Assembly (NCBI RefSeq): GCF_035594765.1
Contig: NC_085842.1
Coordinates: forward strand, 109,034,782 to 109,098,781
Source of the DNA: Anolis carolinensis
Taxonomy: Eukaryota
DNA length: 64,000 nt
Direction: 5' to 3'
In this document: piece by piece, positions 17,146 to 59,939 of the stretch
Position numbering within the stretch: the stretch's first letter is position 1
How the letters are laid out: each line of letters opens with the position of its first letter
Program-made: the position numbers and the translations under genes
Notes under the pieces: model-generated
The model's input: only the letters and a program-made list of their open reading frames with translations
Told to the model about the DNA's origin: nothing
Databases searched by the model: none

Positions 17146-17332
17146 GATAATCAAAAGTAGATCCCAGCAACGAAACTTTCAGCTACTTGTGATTACACAT
17201 GATGAAGATTTTGTGGAACTTTTGAGTCGTTCTGAATATGTGGAAAAGTTCTACAGAATTAAGAAGAACCTTGAACAGTGTTCTGAAATTGTGAAATGTA
17301 ATGTCACCTCTTTGGGATCATATCTTCATTAG
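17146..17332 (+). CDS. RAD50: RAD50 terminal coding exon (exon 25 equivalent), H-loop
   Basis: cccag|GATAAT...CATTAG stop; 187 nt; [41 protein letters not shown]. Confidence 0.98.
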
Positions 17333-24030: not shown

Positions 24031-26187
24031 CATTAAACACAATATAGTCTGTGCAGTCAAGAGAACTATAATGACCATATAGCATATAGTAACACCATTA
24101 TCCCCAATGCAAAGCTCAATACAATGCAATGAAAAATACAATAGAAAAAGAGCAACTGCTTTCAAATGGAAATTATCTTGGTCCGATATCAGTCCCAATG
24201 TATGAAAGCTTCAGGGGTCCAAATTCAATGAAAAAATATTCCAAAAGGGAGTGAACTGGCTGTTGGTCAGGTGGCTACTATGCAGAATGGACAGAATAAA
24301 GATGAAGCACAGCCCTCAAAACAAAAACTTTCAGTGAATGAAGTCATTCATGATTCAAAAGAGCTGTGAAGGTCCAAGTAGGATGAAAATCCTCAAATAA
24401 AAGGAGTGAAAAAATTCAGTTGTGGGTGCAGTATTGGTGCTACAGGGATGCCCAGGTTTTCTAGTACCCTGTTTCGGGAAGAAAACTCCCCTTCTTCGGG
24501 TGATAAAGTGATCAGCAACTATGAGTAATGATTCGGAGTGAATAAGAACAACTTTATCCGCAAAGAACCAAGCAAATGCCTCACAGTGAGCTGTCGAAGG
24601 GCCAAGGACCCCATCACAAGCAAATCCTTCCTTCTGTTAATGGCCCATTCTGACCTCAGCAGATGGACCCATAATAGTTAGGTTTTTTCAGGGAGGCCCT
24701 TGGCTAGTGAGGAATAACAGAAATGACACAAGGACAAAGAGATGGGCCAGTGAGGTTAATGGGGCCCCAGTCCTTTTAGACCAGTGACCTCACAGAGGAC
24801 TTGGCCTGGTACATGTGACCACCAACACAGTTGGCCTGGGGGCATTCTGGAGCATAATGCAGCCAGTATAGACATGAGTGTTGAGTATGGAACAATGAAG
24901 GCACTGCTCATGCACTGCCTTTTACAATCCTCCATCACCCCCTGCCAAAAACACCCCTCCAGATCCCAGCTCTTCGAATAGCTGTTTCACAATCTGCAAC
25001 CCACCTTGAATACGCTAACCCAATGGTGTCTGTTATGAGCCTTGACTTCAAACCACCAACATGAGCGTACAACAGTCCAAGGTCAAGTCAGTTAGTCCAC
25101 AGAAGAAACAGAACCCAAAAGAACAAGCAGAAGGGAAGCCAAATGTCCAGCCCAGAGTCAAAGTCAACTACCAGAATTCCAAGCAATGAGATGGTGTTCA
25201 CTACCCAAGTCCAGGAGCAGTATGAATTCCAAAGTCCAGGCATGGATACAGAAGTTGTGGTCAGGTAACACACAGCAAACTATTAAATGCTGCTTTCACA
25301 GCTGACACCGATTGCTGGCCTTCTTTGCAGCAAGCCTGGGGATCTCCTCATCTGAGCCTTATTCCTCCTTAGTTCCACAAAGAAAGGCACAGTTAACCCT
25401 TCCTTAGCCTGCTCAACAGAAACCTCTTATGTTTGACCAGCTGGCTAAGTAGTTGTTACTTCTGGGTGTGGCTGAGGGAGTTGCTATTCTTGGCTGGGCT
25501 CTAGTTCAACAGCCAAGCCCTCACGCAGCAAACCCTCACCCACGCTATCCCTGACACTGTCAAACTTGTGGCCCTCCAGGTGTTTTGGACTTCAGCCTCC
25601 AGAACTCCTGCCATTGGACAAGCTGGCTAGGGCTTTTGGAGGGTCACAAGTTTGACACCACCGCTCTAACCATTGAAGAACAATGAGCTAGTGTCAGCAC
25701 AGTGGGCAAAAATGAGAAACCAGGATCTATACAAGAAACCAAGCAGAACAAAATATACAATTTTAAGATCTGTGAAAGTACAAATGTAACCACTGATAGT
25801 TCACATTTATGGGGTATGTTAATTGCTCCTAATGCTACCAATAAATTATGCATTGTACAGCCATTGCTTCTTTTCCCTATAATAAACTTCTTCCTATATT
25901 GAAAAGAATGTCTATAATAAGAAAAAGAAGGAAGATGTTTTGGGAAAACACAGAAGAGTTACAAATGGAAGTCAATGGACACGCAAACACCACAATGTAA
26001 TTTTATGCACCGAAGCAGAACAGTTGTATAGTAAAAAGACTTTGGTGTACAATTGAACCTGAAAGTGCTGATGATAAACAAGCAGAATTTCAACATAACC
26101 TAACTTTGACTTTTCACAGCATGCATTCTGGCTGATATGGAAAGTCCAGTTACTTCAATTATTACTTTGATCCAACATGTAAACTAC

Positions 26188-26368
26188 CTGGGGCAAATTC
26201 TCAGAATGCTTTTCCACTGGGTCCTAGGAACTGGGCCTCCGCTCACACTGTATGAACCATCACAACTGTTTTGCGTCAATGTGTGATAAGATCTTTTATC
26301 TTCCTCTTGCGTGAAGTGACATGTCTGCCCTGAAGTCTATTTTAAGAATTCTTTTTATTGATAATGCC
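26188..26368. promoter_or_regulatory. Candidate distal enhancer upstream of cytokine A
   Basis: Identical 19-mer CTGGGGCAAATTCTCAGAA (GAS TTCN3GAA) and 28/35 GATA block shared with 44723-44907. Confidence 0.55.
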
Positions 26369-29304
26369 CTACTCCTCTTCATTGATAATGGCCAATTCTC
26401 CATTTTAAAAGACGTGTGTGTGACATGTTTTTCCCTCCTTTTTAATTTGTCTCCAATAGTGCGGCTGGATCTGCATGATCTTTCCTCTCACTTGTGGTGT
26501 TTTTACATTGGCAATCCTGTTTTGCGACAGATTTTCTTTGCAGAATTCCCTCTGTCATGTGGTCAGATTGATCCCTTAAACTTACAGTGAATCGTAACTT
26601 AATCGATTGCCTTTTCTGCAGTTGCACCATTTTATGGAATTCTCAATTGGTATCAATTTTGGAAACATTTTGACACCAAGTTAAAAATGTAATTAAAATA
26701 TAAGAAGAAGAAGAAAAGGAAGATGAGGGGTAACTAGTAGTGGTAGTTTTGCTACAAAGGTTTTAATAAATAATTAAAATTATTATTTATTTAAGCCTTC
26801 AGGCTAAACTGATTTTGGCTCCACATCTCCTATTGTTATACAGGTATTGTTCAAGATTGTTTTAACTAGTTGTATATTATCTTTTTTCAGCTGAAAACCT
26901 ACTTAATAAAATGTTTGTTTTTTTAAAAAAATACCTGTAATTATTTATTATACTGAATTGATTTTAATGTAAACTATCTATAGATCTTTAATAAAGACTG
27001 GGATAGAAATATTTCAGTAAATAAATGAACAACATTGTATTGTTCTGTTCCTTAAAAATGACACTGTTAATCATCTTAACCATTATTTTTGAGTGGAAGG
27101 GCAGGAATAAAAATGAATGTATAAATAAATACAGTATATGAATTAATCAATTCGTCAATTGTGTATTGTGTATTAGATTGATCATGTTTAATGTTATTGG
27201 TTTTAAATTGTTTTTTATGTCTACTGTTTTAATGATTTTATGTTATGTTTTTAATAGTTGTATAATTGAGGCATTGAGTGTTTCCCTAAATATATGTTTT
27301 ACACTGCTCTGAGTCCTCTGTGGGGTGAGAAGAACGGGAAATAAATGAAGCAAATAAATACATACATAATGTTTAGTTCCATGTAGGTTTCAAAAAGGGA
27401 TCAATACTATCATCTGTTGTACTTTGCAATTTCCAGTTGCACTCTTTGGTTTAACAGAGTACTGCTTTTGGAGTTTAAATATGGCATTAACTTTTGACAC
27501 TTTTGGAGCAGAAAGATAATTGCAATTTTACATAGATAGACAGAAGCACTACCAAAACCCCCAGATTTTCCCCTAGTCACTAATAAAGTCTTTGCACATT
27601 TCCCAATACAACTGTACATACTTGATCATTTATGATTTTGCATTTTATGTTTAGTGGTTTGTGTTTTAGAACTCTTGCTTTTGTGGGTGGGTTCTTGAGA
27701 CCCCTTTGATTTTGTGTGCCTTATTTGTGAGTTTTCCATGCTTATTTGATTACCCACCATAAGGAGGGAATACTGGAACAGATCAATCATGGGTGATTAA
27801 ACTATGACCCATGAGCCGCATGCTTCCTCCTTTTCTACAACCTTTCAATGTTTCTGGGTTTTTATTTCCAAAAAGAAATTAATTACTTTATATTTTGTTG
27901 CTAAAACTGTGATGGCAAACCACTCAATGCATTATAATCAACAGGGAAGAGAATCCCCAAATATAGAGTATAAGCTATAATCAGTGGGATAGTTAATATC
28001 CTATTCATTAGTCAAAATCATGGTAAATATTATATTAAAGTCGATTTAAGTGCATTTTTTTCATTTATCTATTCATATACGTTTAGTAACAATTAATTAA
28101 GAATAAATAGCACTGGCCAACACACATTTTGGTGCCTCAGATGTTAATCCTGTTTCTAGTTATGTTTCTATATTTCTCCATATTTTATATCTGGTGATTC
28201 CAAAAATGGCACCAGTTTTCCCCTATCAGCTCTGAGTTTTGAGATACAGAATCTATGCCATAAATACCATATACCAGTCACTATCTGCTCACCCATAGAA
28301 AACCATGATAACCATATCTATGGAACTAGAGCACATAATAATAATAATAACTTTTTTTTTATACCCCGCCCCATCTCCCTGAAGGAACTCGGGGCGGCTT
28401 ACATGGGGCCAGGCCCGATAAAACAAACAAAACAGTAACAAAGCAATAAAACAATTATCCCAGTAAAAAACATCAACATCAATAAAAACAATCATTAAAA
28501 TCAACAAGCAGGATACAGTGTTAAAAACAGGAGACTAATTCGTAGATCCCAGGCGAAATGCAGAGTGATACGAAATGGGAAAAGGAAATTTCACAGTTGA
28601 ATGGACAATAAAGTGCGGTATAAAATGGCAAGACAACAACAATGGGACTATTATGGAATGGACAGATAGATCAATCCAGCAACAACTAAACATCGAAGGC
28701 CTTTTGAAACAGCCAGGTTTTTAAGCTCTTCCGGAATGCAGTCTATCCAATTTTCTGAATCAGCTCCCCAAATAACCCCAGAAACAGGCCTAAAACCCAA
28801 GACACCAATGTTTTTTTTAGTTGGGCTATGTGATAGGTTTAATTTTTTGCATGATTAAATGTAGTCATTAAAATCAAATGGCTTATAATTATTGGCTGGA
28901 AACTTGTTGGTTAGTCTCAATTAGTGAATGGACTAGTGAGCCAATACATAGATGACTGCAACAGATTCAATGCGTCTAACTCTAGTCAAGACTAACACAA
29001 TTTAGGTCTTTATTAATATCCAGTTTTAATATATTTCATTTATCTATTTTATTATAACCAATGTATATTCCCAAAAAAAATCATTAAGTTCTGTCCTTTC
29101 TTTTTGGTCCACACTTTCTGGCAGGCAACTGCCAGGCACTTGATCAACCTGAAATGTGGACCTTGGTGCTGAAGAAATCAGCCATCGCTCAGACAGACCT
29201 TTGCTTTGATCTGGCATAGCTCTAGTGTTGCCAGGTTTTTGAAATAGCATTTAGGGGACAGTTGAAATTCAAGATATACTGAGTTGACAATCAAAAAGTA
29301 ACTA

Positions 29305-30904: not shown

Positions 30905-31034
30905 AGATTGTGGTTTTTGAATCCACTGACATCACTTATCAGCTTCCTCTGACAATATAAATATTCAGTTTACAAGTGAGATACAAACAGTAAGAATTTC
31001 ACTTGTGGTTCTTAGCAATCCAAAGAACGTGGTC
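30905..31034 (+). promoter_or_regulatory. Cytokine A proximal promoter / 5'UTR
   Basis: TGTGGT (RUNX) 30909, TGACATCA (AP-1/CRE-like) 30927, TTATC (GATA), TTCCTCT, TATAAATA 30956; homologous to cytokine B promoter. Confidence 0.7.
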
Positions 31035-31169
31035 ATGTCTTTGCCAAAACTGCTGTGCATCTGCTGCTTCGCAGGAATTGTTCTTACAGCTCCAACATCA
31101 CCAAACAACTTCAGAAGAGAAATCTCATCATTTCAGATAACCATAAACAATTCGTGTAATGATGCAAAG
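31035..31169 (+). CDS. IL-4/IL-13-family cytokine A (IL13 syntenic position), exon 1: signal peptide + helix A
   Basis: TATAAATA at 30956, ATG 31035; MSLPKLLCICCFAGIVLTAPTSPNNFRREISSFQITINNSCNDAK|gtaaat; 135 nt, phase 0. Confidence 0.88.
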
Positions 31170-42089: not shown

Positions 42090-44370
42090 CAACAGGTATG
42101 TCAAGCCAAACTGAGGACATGGACGATGTCTTTCTAGAACAGATAATCTCACATTCACAAAAGAGAGATTTAATAGTAACGGGAGATTTTAACTATCCTG
42201 ATATTTGTTGGAAGACAAACTCTGCCAAGGATATCAGGTCCCACAAATGCCTCACTTAACGTTACAGCAATTCCATTATCCAGAAGCTGAAAGAGGCAAC
42301 AAGGAGATAAGCTATTTTACATCTGATCCTGTACTAGAGGGGAAGTCAAAAAGAGTCAGATATACACGCTAGACTTGGAGAAAGCTGATTTCAGTAAACT
42401 TAGGAAAAAACTGAGCGTAATCCCAATGTCAGGAACACTAACAAAGAAAGGAGTTCATGATTGATGGTGATACAGAGATTAAAACATTTGGGGGTTTCTC
42501 CCAGAAAAGGAGACCCGTGCTAAATCCAGCAAGGGGGGTTGCGAAACACCTGGCAAGCTTACAAGAAGCAAATAAATGTTTTCCCTATTCTCAATTAGAG
42601 TCTCACCCAGGTTGGAAGCAGGGGTCACCGAGTTTAATTCTGGTCCAGCTGGAACAGGATGATGGCAGCAATATGATGCAAGAAGAACCGACATACCATT
42701 ACAGAGAAAAAGGCACTTTTTATACTTTACCATTTTGAATTTTCTGCCTCCTGCCTTCGCGCTGGTTGGTCAGGGGAGTCCCTGACAGGGAGAATCTGAT
42801 GGGGAGAATCACAGGATCCAGCATCCCTGTGGTTTGGGGAGACAAACCCAATCAGTCTTATGACCGTTTGAAAGGGCTTCGACCCCTCTTCACGTTTCCA
42901 TAAGGGAATAAGTAGGAATCCCAGAATTTCCCCATTGGCCCAGGCAAGCAAAGGGCTTACTGGAGTCACTCTGAGACTAGGAGACGGTGCAAGGAATACA
43001 TGGGTTCATGCAGGGAATGGGCAGAGGGGCAGAAAAGACATTTCAGATACCTGTGCTCATTCATAAAAAGGCTAAACTCATTCATAAAAAACTGATTGGA
43101 GTGTGTGGAGGCGAATCGGGGCCACTATGGCAAAACCGGAGGAGATCCTCAGCTTGGGACAAATTTTATGGCGATTTTTTGGTTATAGAGAACTGTCTGC
43201 AAAAATGTTCCTTTTGCAGGCGGGAAAGTGAAAGCAAGTTGGAAACAGTTTTCTTGCTTTGGTCAATATGTAACAGAAGTCAATGGAGCTTCAATGAAGA
43301 GAGAGTGCCTGAGGTTTTTCTGCAGAAACAATGTATCTATGTGGCTGAGGCTCTTCTGAGAGGGGGGGAAAGCCTGTGGAACTCCTGGCAGTGATCAGCT
43401 GTATGTCAGAGCAATGTGAGTGTGGGGGCTTGCGTGTTCGACATCAGTGGGCGTTTCTGAAAAGTGAGATATTGGACGCACAGTTTTAAACAGTTCCAAT
43501 AAGGAGGAAAAATAGGAGATGATCTAAGGATCTTTCAATTCAACTTAGATTTAAAAGGGACATATACAAGAAATGGAATAAGAGAGAAATCACCAAAGAG
43601 AAATTCAGAGGAATAGCTAGCCTTTGTAGGGATCAATTTAGAGAAACCAAAGCACAGAAGGACCTCATGCTTGCTAAAAAAAGTTAAAAACAATTAAAAG
43701 GGCTTTAAAAAGTTTTGTCCAGAGCAAAAAGGAAGAACAAGGAAATGGTAGGGCTGATGCATACAGGCGTTGGCAAAATGCTAGCAGGAGACAAGGAAAA
43801 GGTAGAACTACTCAACACCTTACGTGCCTGGATGCAGCAGAGAATGCAGCAGAGTAAAGGCAACATAGAAGAGGTAAAGGGGCAGTACAGGAATATCTGG
43901 CTAATCCAAATGAATTCAAGTTTCCAGGGCCACATGAACGCCATCCAAGAGTAGTAAAATAATTGGCAAAAGTAATTTCAGAACCATTGGCAATTATCTT
44001 TGAGAACAAAAGTCCCAGTAGACTGGTGGAGGGCAACTGTTGTCCCTATATTCAAGAAGAGATAAAGGGGGGACCCAAACAGTTACCGTCCAGAAAGCTT
44101 GTTTTCTGCTGCTCTAGAAAGGACACAGAGTAAGGAATGCAAATTTCAGGGGGGGGGGGGGAAGAGTCCACTTAAACATTAGGAAGAATGTCCAGACAAT
44201 AAGAGCTGTAGTGGAATATGCTTCCTCAGAGTGTGGTGAAATCTCCTTCTCTGGAGGTTTTTAAGCAGAGGCTGTATGGTCATCTGTCAGGGGTGCTTTG
44301 ATTCTATGTTACTGAATGGCAGGGAGTTGGACTGGATGGCCCTTGTGGTCTCTTCCAACTCTGATTCTGT
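42090..44370 (+). mobile_element. Decayed CR1 LINE, interrupted by an LTR-like insertion
   Basis: GDFNYPDICW endonuclease motif near 42180, RT-region remnants 43450-44090, CR1 3' end near 44350. Confidence 0.75.
42468..43446. mobile_element. Probable solo LTR inserted in CR1
   Basis: TGAT...ATCA termini, 4-bp TSD ATGG/GTGG; CR1 sequence resumes on both sides. Confidence 0.55.
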
Positions 44371-44722
44371 GACAGTGGCAGAAACAGAGTTGCACATAGA
44401 GTAACATGGCATATTTGTGGAACTCCATTGGCTAACATATGTGTGTGTCCATTTTTAGATAGCCACTCTCTTCCCTTTGTGCTTTGTCTAAAACCTCTTT
44501 TTCAGGAGGAAGGAGAAGGAGCAACTGCTTGTGCTGCCATGGAAGAGAGACACATGATGGAGGCAATTCAGATGATGAAGATGTGGGCGGTGTGGGCATG
44601 AAACAAAAGCAATCTAATTTGCAACATGCAATACAAAGAAATCCCATGCTGGAATAAACAGACATTTTAACTCTTAAGGGAACTCTGCTTCTAATCATTC
44701 ACTTGCCAACCCACACTGTCGA

Positions 44723-44907
44723 CTGGGGCAAATTCTCAGAAGGCGTCTCTTTCTGTCATAAGAATCTCCTCCATTCAGTCATACAATCAGAATCATTTCT
44801 TTTCATAGTCTTAACAATTTTGGCATTTCAGCATCAGTGATAACATCTTTTCTTGTGCTCTTGCCTTAAGTAAATAATCTTTTCTATAACACTTTTTTCA
44901 TAATGCC
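44723..44907. promoter_or_regulatory. Candidate distal enhancer upstream of cytokine B
   Basis: Paralog of 26188-26368; GAS + TGATAA..ATCT double GATA. Confidence 0.55.
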
Positions 44908-46032
44908 ATTCAAATTTATTCACATTTAATGATATGATATTTCCAGTAATAATCTCTGCTGAAATCAATATCTTTCAGCCCAACAGGCCATTTTTCCTAA
45001 AGCAGTACATGTATTACAGATTTGTTTTTTAAAAAATAATAATACTTTTTGTTTGCTGAACATCTGTTTTGAAGATAATGAATCGCAATCATGTTGGAAG
45101 TTTAGGGAGAGCAATATAGGTGCATCTACACTATATAATTAATGCAGTTTGGCACCAGTTTAACTGCCATAGCTCAATGCTATGGGAGATGTAGTTTTAC
45201 AAGGTCTTTAGCTTTCTCTGTCAAAGGGAAATTGGTGTCTCACCAAACTACCAATTCCAGGATTCCATAGCATTGAGCCATGGTGTCAAAGTGCATTAAC
45301 TGTACAGTGCAGATGCACCTTTGATTCCTCAACACTAAAATCTCTGACCAAAGTAAAGCCCCAGGATTTCAAAGGACAGACCATGCTTATGCTTATTCTT
45401 GGTCACTGCAAAGAGTTGTAATCCCTTTATCACTCTACGGAAACCTTTTAAATCCAAGTTCAGTTGAAAGATCCTTAGATCTGGTTTCTTTAGACATCTC
45501 CTATTTTCCCTCCTCATTGGAACTATTCAAAACTGTCCTCAATTGACCACAGACCCCCTGAAGCTTCCCACCAGCCATTCATACTGGGTTCATGCACCCA
45601 GATGACAAGTCATGGCATTCCTACTATAACCACTGAAGGATCATAGCTGTTCTGGCTCCACTAGCACACACTTGCAGACCCAGCGAGGGAGGAAGCAATT
45701 AACCCAGAATTCAGAAATAACTTAGGCAAGGGCAGTATATCAACAGGGCTCAGCGTCTTTACCTGTGGGAGTCTGGTTTGCAGAAGGGTAGTCATGACCG
45801 GCCAGGTTTGGAAAAACAAGCAGCAACAGCAACCAGGATCTAGGAATCTAGGCAGTCCAGGGTTTAGAGTCACAAAAATATGACCTCCATCCAGCACCAA
45901 CTCGAGTTGTCTCTTAGATGGACTGAAACCAGCTGCTCCTAATCAGGATCACCTGATAAAATCTCTCTGTAACATGTTCAATATCTGGTTAATATTTATT
46001 GAAATTTCAGCTTGTCCAGAATGTTCCAGACA

Positions 46033-47985
46033 CTTACTTACTTAGGCGATCCCTCGTAGTTCGAGGATGATTGTCCTCCATCTGTGGGGTCTTGGGGGTG
46101 TGTCTGTAGGTGGCTGAAGAGACCTATTCTTGATCTGCATGTTCTACCACAGTGAGGACATCGGTTTCCAGGTGGAAGGCGGTCCCGGTCAGGGTTGGCT
46201 TGATGGGCCTTCCTCTTGGCACGTTTCTCCCTTAAGCCCTCCATTCATGCCTCTTTGAACTCCGCAGCACTAATGGTCACAGCTGACCTCCAATTAGAGC
46301 GCTCAAGGGCCAGGGCTTCCCAGTTCTCAGTGTCTATGCCACAGTTTTTAAGGTTGGCTTTAAGCCCATTTTAAAATCTCTTTTCCTGCCCACCAACATT
46401 ACGTTTCCCGTTCTTGAGTTGGGAGTAGAGTAGCTGCTTTGGGAGACGGTGATCGGGCATTCGGACAACATGGTCAGTCCAGCGGAGTTGATGGCGTAGG
46501 AGCATCGCTTCAATGCTGGTGGTATTTGCTTCCTCAAGCACGCTGACATTTGTCTGCCTGACTTCCCAAGAGATTTGCAGGTTTTTTCTGAGGCAACACT
46601 GATGTTGCCTAGGAGTTGAGTGTGACGTCTGTAGACCGTCCACGTTTCGCAGGCAGAGACCAGGGTTGGGACGACAATGGCTTTATAAACAAGCATCTTG
46701 GTATCTCTATGGATGTTCCGGTCATCAAACACTCTCTGCTTCAATGTGTTGTTGAAGGCTTTCATGGTCGGGATCACAGGGTTGTTGTATGTATTTCGGG
46801 CTGTATGGCCATGTTCCAGAAGTATTCTCTCCTGATGTTTCACCCACATCTAAGACAGGCATCCTCAGAGGTTGTGAAGAGAGAATACTTCTGGAACATG
46901 GCCATACAGCCCGGAATACATACAACAACTCTACTCTCTGCTTAATTCTGAAAAATGCTGCACTCGCAGAGCTCAGGCAGTGTTGTATTTCAGTGTCGAT
47001 GTTGACTTTTGTGAAGAGGTGGCTGCCAAGGTAGCAGAAATAGTCAACATTTTCTAATGTTACACCATTAAACTGTATTCCTGGCTTTGCAGAGGGATTA
47101 GCTGGTGCCTGTTGGAAGAGCACTTTGGTTTTCTCAATGTTCAATGAGAGGCCAAGCTTCTCGTATGCTTCTGCGAAGGTGTTTAGAGTGGCTTGTAAGT
47201 CTTCTTCTGAGTGCCCACAAACTACGTTGTCATCGGCATATTGGAGTTCTATAACAGATGTTGTGGTGTCCTTGGTTTTGGCTCTCAGTCTGCTGAGGTT
47301 AAATAGCTTGCCATCTGTCTGATAGATGATTTCCACACCAGTGGGAAGCTTCCCATCAACAAGGTGAAGTATCATAGCGATGAAGATGGAAAATAAGGTA
47401 GGGGCAATAACACATCCCTGCTTGACACCTGATTCCACCTTAAATGGGTCACTTTGGGAGCCGTTGTTGTCCAAGACTGTTGCCATCATGTCTTCATGAA
47501 GGAGCCGCAGGAGGTTCACAAATTTGTCAGGGCACCCGATTTTTTGGAGGATGGTCCAGAGAGCGCTGCGATTCACTGTGTTGAATGCCTTTGCAAGGTC
47601 AATGAATGCCATGTACAGAGGCTGATTTTGTTCCCTGCATTTTTTTTGGAGCTGTCGTGCAGTGAAGATCATGTCCACTGTTCCTCTGGAGGGGCGGAAG
47701 CCGTTCTGGGATTCTGGGAGGGTGTCTTCTGAAACAGGGAGAAGGCGGTTTGCAAGGATTCTTGCGAGAATTTTCCCAGCGGATGTTAGAAGGGAGATAC
47801 CGCGATAGTTCCCACAGTCTGTTCTATCCCCTTTCTTGAAAAGGGTGATGATGGTGGCATCCTTGAAGTCTGCTGGGACTTTCTCGGCCGCCCACACTTT
47901 TTCAATGAGCTGTTGGAGTTGTTGTATCAGCTCAGGTCCACCCTCTTTGAAGATTTCAGCAGGGATCCCATCAGGTCCGCTGTAT
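46033..47985 (-). mobile_element. RTE-clade LINE, 5'-truncated, RT domain largely open
   Basis: ORF 46725-47999: GPDGIPAE, NYRGISLL, FIDLAKAF, GVKQGC, YADD; (TAAG)n-like tail. Confidence 0.92.
46742..46932. mobile_element. Penelope pseudo-LTR inverted pair nested in RTE
   Basis: 11-bp TSD ACTCTCTGCTT (46731-46741 / 46933-46943); inverted arms. Confidence 0.8.
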
Positions 47986-48032
47986 TTGTTAATATCCAAT
48001 GTTAGCTACAGTTAACATGCAACACTTTTTTT

Positions 48033-48270
48033 TCATGTCAGGAGCGACTTGAGAAAATATAAGTCACTTCTGTTGTGATAAAATTGGCCATCTGTAAAGA
48101 CATTGCCTAGGGGACGCCCGGATGTTTTGGCATTTTTACCATCCTTGTGGAAGGCTTCTCTCATGTCCCCGCATGGAGCTGGAGCTGATAGAGGGAGCTC
48201 ATCTGTGATCAGCAATTCAACCTTCGATTCAGCAGTCCTGCCAGCACAAGGGTTTAACCCACTGTGCCAC
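48033..48270 (-). mobile_element. Sauria SINE
   Basis: tcatgtcaggagcgacttgagaaa...ggagctggagctgatagagggagctc. Confidence 0.8.
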
Positions 48271-48843
48271 TATGCAATGCTGATTCTGTATAAGCTCATG
48301 GGCTGGTTGCTGAAAAAATAATTTGTGTCTATGGAGTGCCCTTTTCCATTCCTAGTTTTTATGTTGTAGGGTTGAAAATTTCTTGATAGCCCCTTAATCT
48401 AGCACTTTGTTTTCTGATAATTAATCAACAGAAACAGCAAGAATTCAGTTATCGAGGTCAATGTAACTAAGGTAGTATATAAGAACGTAGGATGAGCCAT
48501 GGTGGAGAAAATTAATGGTTGGCTGAGTCTAGTATGGCTCATCTTATGTTCTTATATAGTGCCTCAGTCACATTAAACTTAGTAAGCAGAAATGCACTTT
48601 ATATCTACATCCTATGTGCATTCAGCCATATTGTGCTATATTGATTATATGGCTCTTTTAACTGATTCTACTTTGATAGAGGATTTATCCAGCTTATATA
48701 CCTGGTTTATGTAATGTTGTTATTGTCTTCATGCTGATGTATTTTATTTTATGTATTATATATTTTATGTATGGCATCTTTGTGTGCTATTTTGTAAGCC
48801 GCCCCGAGTTCCTATGGGAGATGGTGGCGGGATATAAATAAAG

Positions 48844-49339: not shown

Positions 49340-49550
49340 CCATAATTTCCATTTTATCATTCATTTTCCATCTTATCATTTGGATATGTGGTTTTTGGGT
49401 TCTCTGAATAGGCAAATTCACAACTCATCTCTACATTTACGTCAGGTATTTATCTGTTTCCTCTGGTTATAAATAAGCAGCTTGCAAATAAATGACAAAG
49501 CAGTAAGGAGGACACCATTCATTGACCTGACCAATCCAAAGAACGAGATC
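49340..49550 (+). promoter_or_regulatory. Cytokine B proximal promoter / 5'UTR
   Basis: Alternating TTTCC (NFAT) and TTATC (GATA) 49346-49377, TGTGGT 49387, TTCTCTGAA (GAS) 49400, TTACGTCA 49437, TTATC, TTCCTCT, TATAAATA 49468. Confidence 0.72.
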
Positions 49551-49688
49551 ATGCTTTTGAAAGCAATCTTTGCCTTTTGTTTCTTGGCTCAAGGTATTTC
49601 TAAAATTGCAGCGCAACCAGTCAAGAAGTTTGAAAGGGAAGCACAAGAATTGGTGAAGATTGTGAATGCCACATGCACGGTGTTAAAG
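49551..49688 (+). CDS. IL-4/IL-13-family cytokine B (IL4 syntenic position), exon 1: signal peptide + helix A
   Basis: TATAAATA at 49468, ATG 49551; MLLKAIFAFCFLAQGISKIAAQPVKKFEREAQELVKIVNATCTVLK|gtaaga; 138 nt phase 0. Confidence 0.9.
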
Positions 49689-51064: not shown

Positions 51065-51725
51065 AAGGGCCGGGAGGGCTTTTGCACAATTAAAACTCGT
51101 GCACCAACTGCATCCGTACCTCTAAAAGTCTGATCTGGCCACAGTGGTCCACGCCTTAGTTACATCTTGGATAGATTACAGCAATGCACTCTACTTGGGG
51201 CTGCCTATGAAGACGGTTCAAAAACTGCAATTTGTGCAGAGAGCAGCTGCCCGATTTCTAAAAGCAGCTGACTACAGGGAGCATACTCCTCCCTTGTTAA
51301 AGCAGCTCCACTGGCTGCCTGTGAGTTTCAAGGCCCAATTAAAAGTGCAAGTTATCACCTATAAAGCCCTTTATGGTTCAGGCCTTTAGGTCCTCAGGAG
51401 TGGGGGCTTCTCACGGTCCCACCAAGATTGACTATTTTTAGTATGATGATGGACCTTTAGCCTTGTCAATATCTATTGGTTTTAACTGGTCTTGTCTCCA
51501 CGGTATAATATGTCTTAAACCCAGTACAATTTTTAACATATGCATTTATTTATTGCGATATTGTTTTTAAAGTTTTAAATGATTATTAGTTATATTATAT
51601 ATTATGTCTTTTTTTTTTTTTGCTTATGTATGTACAGTATTGGGATTTGATTTTGTGGTGAGCCGACCCAAGTCCTTGTGGAGAGGGGGCGGGATATAAA
51701 TAAAGTTTATTATTATTTATTATTT
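51065..51725 (+). mobile_element. L2 LINE 3' fragment in cytokine B intron 3
   Basis: VHALVTSWIDYSNALYLGLP..LQFVQRAAAR..LHWLPV; tail gggatataaataaagtttattattat. Confidence 0.85.
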
Positions 51726-56165: not shown

Positions 56166-59100
56166 TTATTAACATTAAGGCTGTATTAGTTTCCGTTTTG
56201 TTTTTTTTACTTCAAAATAAGTTATGTGTAGTGTGCATAGGATTTTTTTTCATATACTTTTAAAAACTATAGTCCGTCCCTCCAACAGTCTGAGGGACTG
56301 TGAACTGGCCCCCTGTTTAAAAAGTTTGGGGTCCCCTGATCCAAGGGAACACCTCAAAGATATGCTATCGAGGTAGCTAACGCCCTAGTTGAGTGGGCTT
56401 TCAAATGGGGTGGTGGATCTTTTTGAGACAACTGGTAAGCCAGCTTGATGGTGAAGCTGATAAGCGTTGTGGCAAGATCACCATTCCTTTGGCGCCATTG
56501 CGATACTTCACAAAGAGCTTATGTGTCTTACGAAAACCCTTGGTTCTATCCAAATAGAAAGTGAGTGCCCTCCGGGCATCCAGCATATGAAGGGATTGTT
56601 CGAGGCTTGTATCAGGGTTCTGAAAAAATCCTGGAAAAATGATGTCTTGCAACATGTGAAAGGCAGAGGCAACTTTTGGCAAAAAAAGTAATATCTGTTC
56701 CTAGAACTACCTTATCATGGTGAAATCAGAGATAGGGCTCATCTGCAAGCAATGCGCAGAGCTCACTGGCTCTTCGAGCAGTCGTGACTGCTACAAGGAA
56801 GGCCGCTTTCCAAGAAACATAAGGAACTTCAGCAGAAGCCATTGGCTCGAAGGGAGCTTTCGTTAATGCAGACAAAACTAAATCTAAACACTAAGCTGGC
56901 GGTGGGGTTACCAGTGGTCGAAGATTCTTGTAACCCCTAAGAAACAGTTGAATTAAGGAAACTTGAAAACATGAAGGGGCTCCTGCTCGACGTTGATATG
57001 TAGATATCGCGGTGAGATAACATTTAAGGGATGATAGGAATAGATTATCATGGGCTAACCACTGAAGGAAGTCCAGAAGCAAAGGCGTAGGTGCTTTCAA
57101 TGGCTCTATACCATGCTGATGGGTGAAAGTAGAGAATCTTCCCCAGTTTGCCGCGTAGGACCTCTGTGTGGAGGGTCTGTGTGTGGCATCTAAAACCTGT
57201 GTCATGGCTGCTGAGAGTTGCACTGCCGAAGGCACCAAGCTGTCAGACGCAGGATTTGAAGGTTGGAGTGAAACACTGCTCCATCTTGAATGGACAGAAG
57301 ATCCGGCCTTTTGCTGAGGGTGAGATAGTTGTTTGCCACCATCATGTTGAAGAATGGAAACCACGGTTGCCGTGGCCACCATGGTGCTATGAGAATAGCA
57401 TTGATGTTGTCTGCATATGCCTTGGTGATGACTCTCATCAACAGAGGTATTGGCGGGTCGATATACAGGAAGAGGCCATTCCAATTGAAGAGGAATGCAT
57501 CTCCCAGAGAGCCATTGTGCTCATCCTGCATCCTTCTGGTACAGTAGAGGGGACATTTGGCATTTTGCGGTGTTGCAAACAGATTGATGGATGGCTGTCC
57601 CTATTGCTGAAACAACCGGTTCACTTTGTCATGATGGAGAGACCATTAGTGGTACAAAGACCAAGTCCTGCTGAGACAGTCAGCCATCACATTGTTCTCT
57701 CCTGGAAGATGAACAGCAGTGAGGCGTATCCCCCTTGGCAGACACCAATCCCAGATTTGCAGGGTGAGACAAAGTAGAGAGTGGAATCTTGTTCCTACCT
57801 GCTTGTCCAGGTACTACATGGCAGTGGTGTTGTCCATACAGATTTGGACAATATGGCTGCGAAGAGAGTTTTCGAATGCTCTGAGAGTCTTCTGTACAGC
57901 AATAAGCTCCAACAGGTTGATGTGACAAGCCGCTTCAGATGGCGACCAGTGGTCTTGTATTGCAGGAGTGCTGGAATGAGCTGCCCATCCTTGAAGAGAG
58001 GCATCCATGGTCACCACTCTTGATGGACCTTTCATGCGAAACGACATGCCAACACAGACATTCTGGTGGGATGTCCACCACTGCAGGGACTTGTGTACGG
58101 CTGAAGTTGGTACTAGAAGTCAGAGAGGGCTGTGATGAAGAGGGTTGAATACCCTTAAAAACCATGCTTGCAAAGGTCGAAACAGAAGGTGAGTGAATGG
58201 CATCACTGCCATAGTTGAGGCCATGTGGCCTAAGGTGGACTGAATGTGTCTCGCTGACACACTTGGCTGATGTATGACCTTTTGGACAGCAGAGCACAGG
58301 TTCTGGAAATATGCTTCTGGAAGGTATGCCTTTTGCATGAGAGTGTTGAGGCAGCCTCTGATAAACTGAATATCCTGTGTAGGATCTAAGTGTGATTTCT
58401 TGCGGTTGACCAAAAGGCTGAGGTCCTGAAGGAGAGAAGGAGTGACTTCTATATGATGGAGGAGATGAGATTGAGAAAGACCGACCAAAAACCAGTCATC
58501 GATATATGGAAAGACTGTAATGCCCTTCAGTCGTAAGTGAGCTGCTACAGCTGCCATCACCTTTGTGAAAACCCGGCGTGCAGTCAAAATCCCAAAAGGA
58601 AGGACCTGAAAAGAAAAAGGCACAATTGCCCCTTTCTCAAGTAGGGCCCTAACCTCATCCCAAAGCACAGAGGATGGTGCTCTAGTGTGAATGAAACTTA
58701 ATGGTGGAGTTTTCTCAAATTCAATGGCATAGCCATGTTGAATGACATCAAGAACCCATTTGTCAGTAGTAATAGCCTGCCATGCAGAAAAAAATCTAGC
58801 CAGTCATGTGCCAAAGCGAACATGTTCTGGCTGGTGAGAAATGGGTTTGATTGAAGGGAAACACCCAAAATCTTGTGAACCTGTGGAGGTGAAGGGGTAC
58901 CACACCCATGCGGAGACAATATAGTCATAAGGGAGGGTGAAAGATTGTCGCTAAAAACGTCATTTTGCCTTCTGTTGGGGTTGATCTTTAAACTGCTGGC
59001 GTGCTTTAGCCTGTAGCTGTGGAGAGCGTGGCACTCTTGTTTGCATTGATGGCCTAAGAGAAGGTAGGTATGTCTTTCTGGAATAAGAGGAAGATGAAGA

Positions 59101-59939
59101 AACCCTATTTTTGGGTTGGTAAGTAGACTGCTAAAAACCATATTTTTGTGCAGATTGTCTGACCTCCTTGGACTCTTTAAGGTTAGTGTTTGTATCAGGA
59201 TGAAACAATCCGTCATCATGAGCAGGGAGATCCTTGGCCAGTATCTTTCCTTCTTCAGACAGAGCTGAGGTACGCAGCCATGCTTGTTGATGCAGGAATG
59301 TGGATAATGCAAAGAGTTTTCCAGTGTTATCTGCAGAGTGCTGGGTCGTGTACTTTTGAGCATGGCACAGAAGTTTCTCTCAACAGTAAGCCTTAGGCAT
59401 GGTTTGCTGCTTGGAGGGCAAGAGATCAAGGTAAGGCCTAACCTTCTGACACAAGAAGTGTTGATATGAAGCCATATAGGCACCATAGTGTGCCATGTGC
59501 ATGCTCATGTTTGCATTGGCATGTGCTTTCCTTCCCATAGTGTCCAGTTTTTCCCCTCTTTGTCAGATGGTGTGGGTTGAGTGGTATGCAATCACTTACA
59601 CTTGGCCATGTTGACGACTACTGTATTAGCTTTAGGAGGTTTGGCTACCCATTCCGCAGATGTTAGGTCAATGTGGTACCTCGTATCCCATTGACGGGAG
59701 GCACCCGGAACAGCAGACGGCGCCTGTAAGTCAGAGAGGTTTCTAGTCTGCTGCAGCAAGGGCGACGCAAAAAAAAGGAACTAAGGCTACAGCCCCTTGT
59801 TCTGCCTATATCTCCCTCTGGTGAGGGTGTGTGGGGCCATAGCCACATGCCTTCAGCTTTTCAGAGGTTTCCATTGATTGCTGCACAGGTGCACCAACTA
59901 CCACGTGTGCTTATTTCAACAGACACTATGAAGGAGAAA
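55130..59939 (-). mobile_element. DIRS1-like tyrosine-recombinase retrotransposon (decayed)
   Basis: RT (VLPFGI, YIDDW), RNase H (TMDASLQGW, HINLLEL, MDNTTA), methyltransferase-like (NLFAT, YIDPP, APWWPRQPWF), YR (LDARRALTFYLDRT); inverted terminal repeats 55137-55269 / 59777-59910; ICR 55386-55427. Confidence 0.92.
55586..56338. mobile_element. hAT MITE nested in the DIRS YR gene
   Basis: TIR CAGGGGTCCCCAAACT, 8-bp TSD ATCCAAGG; carries CR1-tail-like segments. Confidence 0.85.

Follow-up and report, generated by a model that had tools for sequence, protein, structure and literature searches.

The control of type-2 cytokine genes has been described for several regulatory elements. CGRE was identified as a GATA3 element located 1.6 kb upstream of Il13 (PMC4567381), and CNS-1 was identified as an enhancer in the intergenic region between IL13 and IL4 (PMC3546009). 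For the HS2/hcIE enhancer, which is located in intron 2 of Il4, a cooperation of STAT5 and GATA3 was shown, and Bcl6/STAT sites were found across the mouse Th2 locus, including the site BS1 in CNS1 (PMC5904433). In the proximal enhancer of Il13, a cluster of STAT5 and GATA2 sites was reported (bioRxiv 10.1101/2020.09.29.318618).

This paper will focus on a 64-kb stretch of DNA from the lizard Anolis carolinensis (referred to as the window), which carries the 3' end of RAD50, followed by two IL-4/IL-13-type genes, designated gene A and gene B. To our knowledge, the regulation of the type-2 cytokine locus has been studied almost only in mouse and human, and the IL-4/13 genes of reptiles are barely annotated. 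For this DNA, a first-pass annotation had proposed a module with a STAT and a GATA site, present in duplicate with one module ahead of each cytokine gene, and had interpreted it as an enhancer revealed by paralog footprinting. In the analysis presented here, the two blocks were found to be homologous, unique and non-coding, with constraint on copy 1, the block between RAD50 and gene A. The arrangement of one module per cytokine gene was recovered in A. carolinensis only, since copy 2, the block between gene A and gene B, is much eroded and a counterpart was not detected in the A-B spacer of a skink.

We consider it highly probable that copy 1 is under constraint as a cis-element and has its paralog in copy 2. 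With moderate confidence, copy 1 is interpreted as an old, selectively kept cis-regulatory element, which most likely would serve as a distal GATA/STAT enhancer of the IL-4/IL-13-type gene located about 4.8 kb downstream. Enhancer activity, target gene, the identity of the factors and the cell type are what we infer from the sequence.

Organization of the locus and the paired blocks

The exons of RAD50 are located on the + strand of the window, with the stop codon at 17330-17332. Orthologous loci were reached from the last exon of RAD50, by which full-length RAD50 proteins were identified, and from these the corresponding genomic loci. The A. carolinensis locus obtained in this way (L001, GCA_035594765.1) showed 100% identity to the window across 10.3 kb. 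KIF3A was not reached within the 64-kb window. The coordinates of the features are given in Table 1.

Table 1. Features of the RAD50-cytokine region in the A. carolinensis window (positions are those of the window)
Feature	Position	Strand	Remark
RAD50 last coding exon	17147..17332	+	100% identity to the A. carolinensis RAD50 C-terminus (P0251); orthology anchor
Copy 1, conserved non-coding element (CNE) between RAD50 and cytokine gene A	26100..26430	+	orthologs in four lizards
Copy 1 GAS-type palindrome TTCTCAGAA	26198..26206	.	within the 19-mer 26188-26206
Copy 1 opposed double GATA: TGATAA, 7 bases, TTATC	26284..26300	.	both cores kept in 5/5 copy-1 orthologs
Copy 1 3' part with two more TGATAA (26359-26364, 26383-26388)	26359..26388	+	read from the sequence
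Gene A promoter and 5' UTR block	30936..31043	+	collinear paralog match to 49450-49559; GATA (TTATC), TTCCTCTG, TATAAATA
Copy 2, eroded paralog of the CNE core, between genes A and B	44720..44893	+	profile match
Copy 2 GAS-type palindrome TTCTCAGAA	44733..44741	.	within the 19-mer 44723-44741
Copy 2 single GATA motif TGATAA	44838..44843	+	opposed second GATA lost
Gene B promoter and 5' UTR block	49450..49559	+	paralog of the gene A promoter block

The similarities on which the proposal of a duplicated module had been based were reproduced. The 19-mer that had been reported as identical at 26188-26206 and 44723-44741 has only these two matches in the window when up to three mismatches are allowed, with 0.01 expected. 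It is also the longest exact word common to the two upstream regions, transposons and microsatellites aside. The second match, between 26283-26317 and 44837-44871, is gap-free and identical at 28 of 35 positions, as claimed. Anchored beside the 19-mer, a match of this quality was reached by none of 2000 Markov shuffles, and among random real segment pairs it has a probability of P = 0.0013. Downstream of these matches, ATAATGCC is present in both copies, at 26361 and 44900.

The start codons of gene A and gene B are located at 31035 and 49551, respectively. The modules lie 4847 and 4828 bases ahead of them, in agreement with the distance of about 4.8 kb that had been given for each cytokine gene, and both modules are collinear with a second paralogous block, located at the promoters. 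The near-equal spacing of 4.8 kb is probably a coincidence, because at least 2.5 kb of the interval between copy 2 and gene B consist of highly repeated DNA.

Conservation of copy 1 among lizards

Alignment to other reptiles, which had been proposed as a way to check the element, identified orthologs of copy 1 at the same position in four lizards. These are Anolis sagrei (L002, 55242-55615), the agamid Phrynocephalus forsythii (L004, 64171-64507), the skink Lerista edwardsae (L003, 30847-31250) and the lacertid Zootoca vivipara (L009, 49102-49421). The span of skinks, lacertids and iguanians amounts to about 190-200 million years.

Over positions 26117-26420, an identity of 94.6% to A. sagrei with 7 gap columns was obtained, compared to 86.8% with 382 gap columns for the surrounding 2 kb. 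The corresponding JC distances are 0.056 for the CNE and 0.145 for the flanks. When the spacer between RAD50 and the cytokine gene was compared between Anolis and Phrynocephalus, Lerista or Zootoca, few places were found to align, the CNE and the 3' end of RAD50 among them. Other aligning blocks of this spacer are located about 2.4 kb past the RAD50 stop codon (in Zootoca) and at the promoter of gene A (in Phrynocephalus). The CNE is located 3.7-8.9 kb downstream of the RAD50 stop codon, and its distance to the downstream promoter of gene A is about 4.8-5.2 kb in Anolis and Phrynocephalus. These sequence comparisons support long-term purifying selection on copy 1, whose place between RAD50 and the first of the IL-4/13-type genes is fixed.

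In the same spacer, the segment 19589-19925, about 2.3-2.6 kb past the RAD50 stop codon, aligns to Phrynosoma (L008, 69923-70243) and to Zootoca (L009, 46636-46742). It may represent the terminal part of the RAD50 3' UTR, or a further regulatory block.

A turtle, a gharial, a gecko and a colubrid snake gave no match to the CNE in the 10 kb downstream of RAD50, with 59% N in the flank of the gharial. These negatives are weak, because the flank covers just 10 kb and the distance of the CNE from RAD50 may exceed this length. In these species, the CNE may lie beyond the 10-kb flank, or it may be confined to a part of the Squamata. For Phrynosoma, the flank ends at the equivalent of 22.5 kb in Anolis, short of the place where the CNE is expected. 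A search for annotated relatives with the cytokine part of the Lerista protein (P0004:178-281) as a query resulted in zero matches.

Copy 2 as a paralog of copy 1

For copy 2, an nhmmer profile was built from four copy-1 orthologs, with copy 2 left out. This profile matched the positions 44720-44873 with an E value of 6e-11, and a core profile matched copy 2 at 44723-44890. Besides the two loci, no match to the CNE profiles was found in 790 kb, comprising the window and eleven loci.

The spacers between the matching parts had been described as diverged. This holds for the comparison within Anolis, where the spacers of copy 1 and copy 2 align with a score of only 9.0, but not for the comparison to other lizards, since the 95-base spacer of copy 2 aligns to the copy-1 spacers of the skink and the lacertid with scores of 27.5 and 26.5 (shuffle mean about 9, sd 2.6; reached by none of 1000 shuffles). 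The copy 2 spacer hardly aligns to that of Anolis copy 1 because copy 1 of Anolis and copy 1 of Phrynocephalus share a deletion of about 40 bases. The segment deleted there is kept in copy 2, and therefore the split of the two copies predates the divergence of Anolis and Phrynocephalus. Judged from these alignments, the two blocks are truly homologous, and copy 2 is an old paralog of copy 1.

A phylogenetic tree agrees with an old split, in that the copy-1 sequences branch in the order of the species and copy 2 attaches toward the root, on a long branch of 0.75 substitutions per site. A grouping of copy 2 with Anolis copy 1 was not rejected by the AU test (p 0.21). Since the tree alone cannot date copy 2, the old split is argued from the indel evidence. 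The length of the branch implies that much of copy 2 may be evolving freely.

A less likely reading is that copy 1 alone works, with copy 2 as a decaying remnant of the duplication that has no present function. The second GATA and most of the 3' part are gone from copy 2, as is the upstream block, in which 12 of the 25 columns invariant in copy 1 match, a value near chance. Its long branch and its position hemmed in by transposons are in line with such a decay, as is the result from Lerista, the sole other species in which the A-B spacer was covered, where no counterpart of copy 2 was detected by a profile search of this short spacer. The distribution of the remaining matches argues for more than decay. 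The perfect run of 19 bases is unlikely under even decay (P 0.007-0.01 if mismatches are evenly spread), and the agreement with copy 1 is enriched at invariant columns, with matches at 49 of 63 of these and at 33 of 55 variable columns (p 0.03). These two modest tests suggest that the remainder of copy 2 may still be constrained. The sequence of the 19-mer is identical to the ortholog consensus, which is also the inferred ancestral state, so that a recent gene conversion is not needed as an explanation.

Conserved motifs of the element

The sequence AA.TTCT.AGAA.GC was found to be invariant in six of six aligned sequences, and its central base alone varies, being C, T or A. The conserved island had been described as a GAS site of the type TTCN3GAA, and this description was confirmed by the invariant half-sites in all six sequences. 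It is not a STAT6 site of the classical N4 type (TTCN4GAA), since in every sequence the spacer has three bases, and not four. The N3 spacing presumably fits STAT5, other N3 STATs or BCL6, rather than the N4 type of STAT6. The tail GAA.GC, kept after the palindrome, resembles the BCL6 consensus; in Phrynocephalus, TTCTTAGAAAGC is present.

The sequence TGATAA.ATCT likewise shows no variation among the six sequences. The opposed TATC is found in five of five copy-1 orthologs and is lost in copy 2. Of the opposed double GATA site that had been claimed for the module, the pair is therefore present in copy 1 (26284-26300), and the first GATA alone is kept in copy 2. In the 64-kb window, this opposed GATA pair is the sole arrangement of its kind. 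Copy 1 has two more TGATAA motifs in its 3' part. A. sagrei has both of them and Phrynocephalus has one, and neither has been retained in Zootoca or Lerista.

In the window, TTCN3GAA occurs 28 times and WGATAR 189 times. Motifs of both types are common, and therefore only their conservation carries weight. The GAS site and the first GATA are exactly the letters that are kept both in the orthologs and in the paralog. Further kept blocks are GC.TCA ahead of the GATA pair, CCTCC.CTCA, the palindrome GACATGTC and T.TTTTAAGAA. Since the best-kept letters form a STAT-type and a GATA-type site, the element is most likely a duplicated gene switch.

Promoters and the cytokine genes

The promoters of the two anole genes and of gene A in Phrynocephalus (L004, 69433-69574) have in common an invariant TTATC.G.TTCCTCTG, followed by TATAAATA, and the TATA box. 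The same three sequences share AATC.AAAGAAC just ahead of the start codon. With TTATC common to the three, the promoters therefore also keep a candidate GATA site.

Several further observations were made on the cytokine genes. About 1.1 kb past the stop codon of gene A, the segment 37816-37960 shows 77-83% identity to Lerista (L003, 41357-41505), is rich in ATTTA and ends at AATAAA. It resembles an AU-rich terminus of the 3' UTR of gene A, a feature typical of cytokine mRNAs with low stability. In Lerista, a hypothetical protein (P0004, KAJ6667944.1; L003, 10001-40754) contains the last exons of RAD50 fused to the exons of the first IL-4/13-type gene. This fusion is a read-through artefact of the gene model, by which the skink locus was reached and which yields the sequence of the skink cytokine A and 10 kb beyond the cytokine A gene. 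Another read-through model was identified in an Ovis hybrid (P0160, GCA_023701655.1), where a hypothetical protein fuses RAD50 and IL13 across 193 kb.

In the gecko Heteronotia binoei, the segment 59437-59556 of the minus strand (L005), about 9 kb past RAD50, shows 69% identity to an exon of gene B (51132-51251), a hint that the cytokine genes may be ordered or oriented differently in geckos. Downstream of gene B in the window, long open reading frames on the minus strand (56891-59486; 197, 182 and 262 aa among others) appear retroelement-like.

Proposed role of the element

In the proposed mechanism, the element would be read as double-stranded DNA, and a GATA factor bound to the pair of TGATAA and TTATC would make it competent. 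In type-2 lymphocytes, GATA3 would take this part; in cells that resemble mast cells or basophils, GATA1/2 would do so. A dimer of an N3-class STAT (STAT5-like) on TTCT.AGAA, about 80-120 bases upstream of the GATA pair, would add the dependence on a cytokine signal, and BCL6 may compete for the same site. The element would then act on the downstream promoter, which has its own GATA site beside the TATA box. Copy 2 is the leftover of an old duplication that predates the copy-1 deletion shared by Anolis and Phrynocephalus; it kept the GAS site, one GATA and part of the spacer, and the rest was lost. For gene B it might serve as a switch that is weaker or sub-functionalised, or it might be a relic.

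A regulatory role of another kind appears unlikely for copy 1, but has several observations on its side. Here, copy 1 would be a silencer read mainly by BCL6 at the GAS-like site, an element of RAD50 or of the whole locus, or an element active in a tissue outside type-2 immunity. The invariant GAA.GC extension has a likeness to the BCL6 consensus, the element is located 3.7-8.9 kb from the RAD50 stop codon, and several equally conserved blocks are without an assigned factor. Bcl6/STAT sites are moreover known across the Th2 locus of the mouse (PMC5904433). On the other side, a copy was duplicated or kept beside the second cytokine gene while RAD50 is single-copy, and the GATA pair together with the GATA sites of the promoters suits the cytokine genes. 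A distal GATA/STAT enhancer of gene A is the interpretation preferred here.

Uniqueness and non-coding nature

In two independent studies of anole DNA, copy 2 was found inside single contigs, corresponding to 44343-45148 and 44345-45112, with one or two differences. The summed contig depth was 7-13 in the two bins with copy 2, compared to 1e4 to 1e6 in the flanking bins and in most of 45910-48431. Such depths cannot be equated with copy numbers, but the contrast amounts to five orders of magnitude. The segments 44164-44551, 44940-45327 and 45910-48431 are extremely repeated in the anole contigs, with summed depths of 1e4 to 1e6. The segment 45119-45283 behaves as an inverted-repeat element, in that contigs there join opposite strands.

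Many dispersed copies in the genome had been named in the first-pass annotation as the sign of an old transposon. At a likeness of at least 80%, such copies were not found among the anole DNA contigs. An origin of both copies from an exapted ancient transposon, of which very diverged further copies may exist in the genome, is accordingly regarded as very unlikely. The locus is full of transposons, the profile search spanned 790 kb only, and the contig test detects copies at a likeness of at least 80% only, which leaves some room for such an origin. However, the element is without terminal repeats, target-site duplications or coding remnants, it has a fixed syntenic position in five species, it is single-copy at the likeness of at least 80%, and no further matches were found in the window or in the eleven loci.

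An unannotated exon or a gene for a non-coding RNA is a still less probable explanation of the block. At least two stops per frame were found in all six frames in every species, and the indels are not multiples of three. For a structured RNA, RNAalifold gave a weak consensus of -12.85 kcal/mol over 377 columns, with a covariation term of +3.08, which counts against a structure; thus, a consensus RNA structure is not supported, and zero matches to Rfam were found in the window. A CTCF-type reading was rejected by eye on the alignment. Finally, a chance similarity of the two copies, for which nothing more than the AT-rich composition speaks, is already refuted by the match with E 6e-11 from the profile built without copy 2, with the 19-mer expectation, the shuffle tests and the spacer alignment scores all against it.

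Comparison to the mammalian elements

Among the mammalian elements, CGRE is similar to copy 1 in its location between RAD50 and the first type-2 cytokine gene, in being conserved and non-coding, in its several GATA motifs and in its presumed role as a distal activator. The two differ in their distances, with copy 1 located 4.85 kb from the start codon and CGRE 1.6 kb from the transcription start, and copy 1 contains an invariant N3 GAS site. When the CNE profiles were searched against a felid RAD50 gene with a flank of 10 kb, which ends short of IL13, no match was obtained, the best E values being 4-8.

CNS-1 is similar to copy 2 in being located in the spacer between two cytokine genes, and copy 2 contains a GAS-type and a GATA site. 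In contrast, copy 2 is the eroded paralog of an upstream element, a feature not known for CNS-1. With the Il4 HS2/hcIE enhancer and the Il13 proximal enhancer, the anole element shares the presence of a STAT5-type and a GATA site in one type-2 cytokine element. Here, the location 4.8 kb upstream differs from the intronic or proximal location of these enhancers, and the lineage is another one, so that the logic is alike, but not the sequence. A further likeness exists to duplicated (shadow-like) enhancers after a tandem duplication, with two homologous copies at matching upstream places, the second of which is partly degenerate.

A far-reaching extension, to which we assign a low probability, would be that the IL-4/13 gene of the ancestral amniote, or of an earlier tetrapod, had a distal STAT5-plus-GATA enhancer that was copied with the gene, and that the squamate pair as well as CGRE and CNS-1/HS2 descend from it. 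If this were true, the GATA/STAT wiring of type-2 immunity would be a single ancient invention, visible in lizards as paralogous DNA.

Implications

The element described here comprises 330 bases, is defined per base, and is kept in skinks, lacertids and iguanians, and its paralog lies next to gene B. With the complete element at gene A and the eroded core at gene B, the locus offers a natural experiment on the fate of an enhancer after a tandem gene duplication. The element also adds to the case that the two unannotated cytokine genes are real and regulated. In addition, it provides a testable handle on whether the control of type-2 cytokines by GATA factors and STAT5 predates the mammals.
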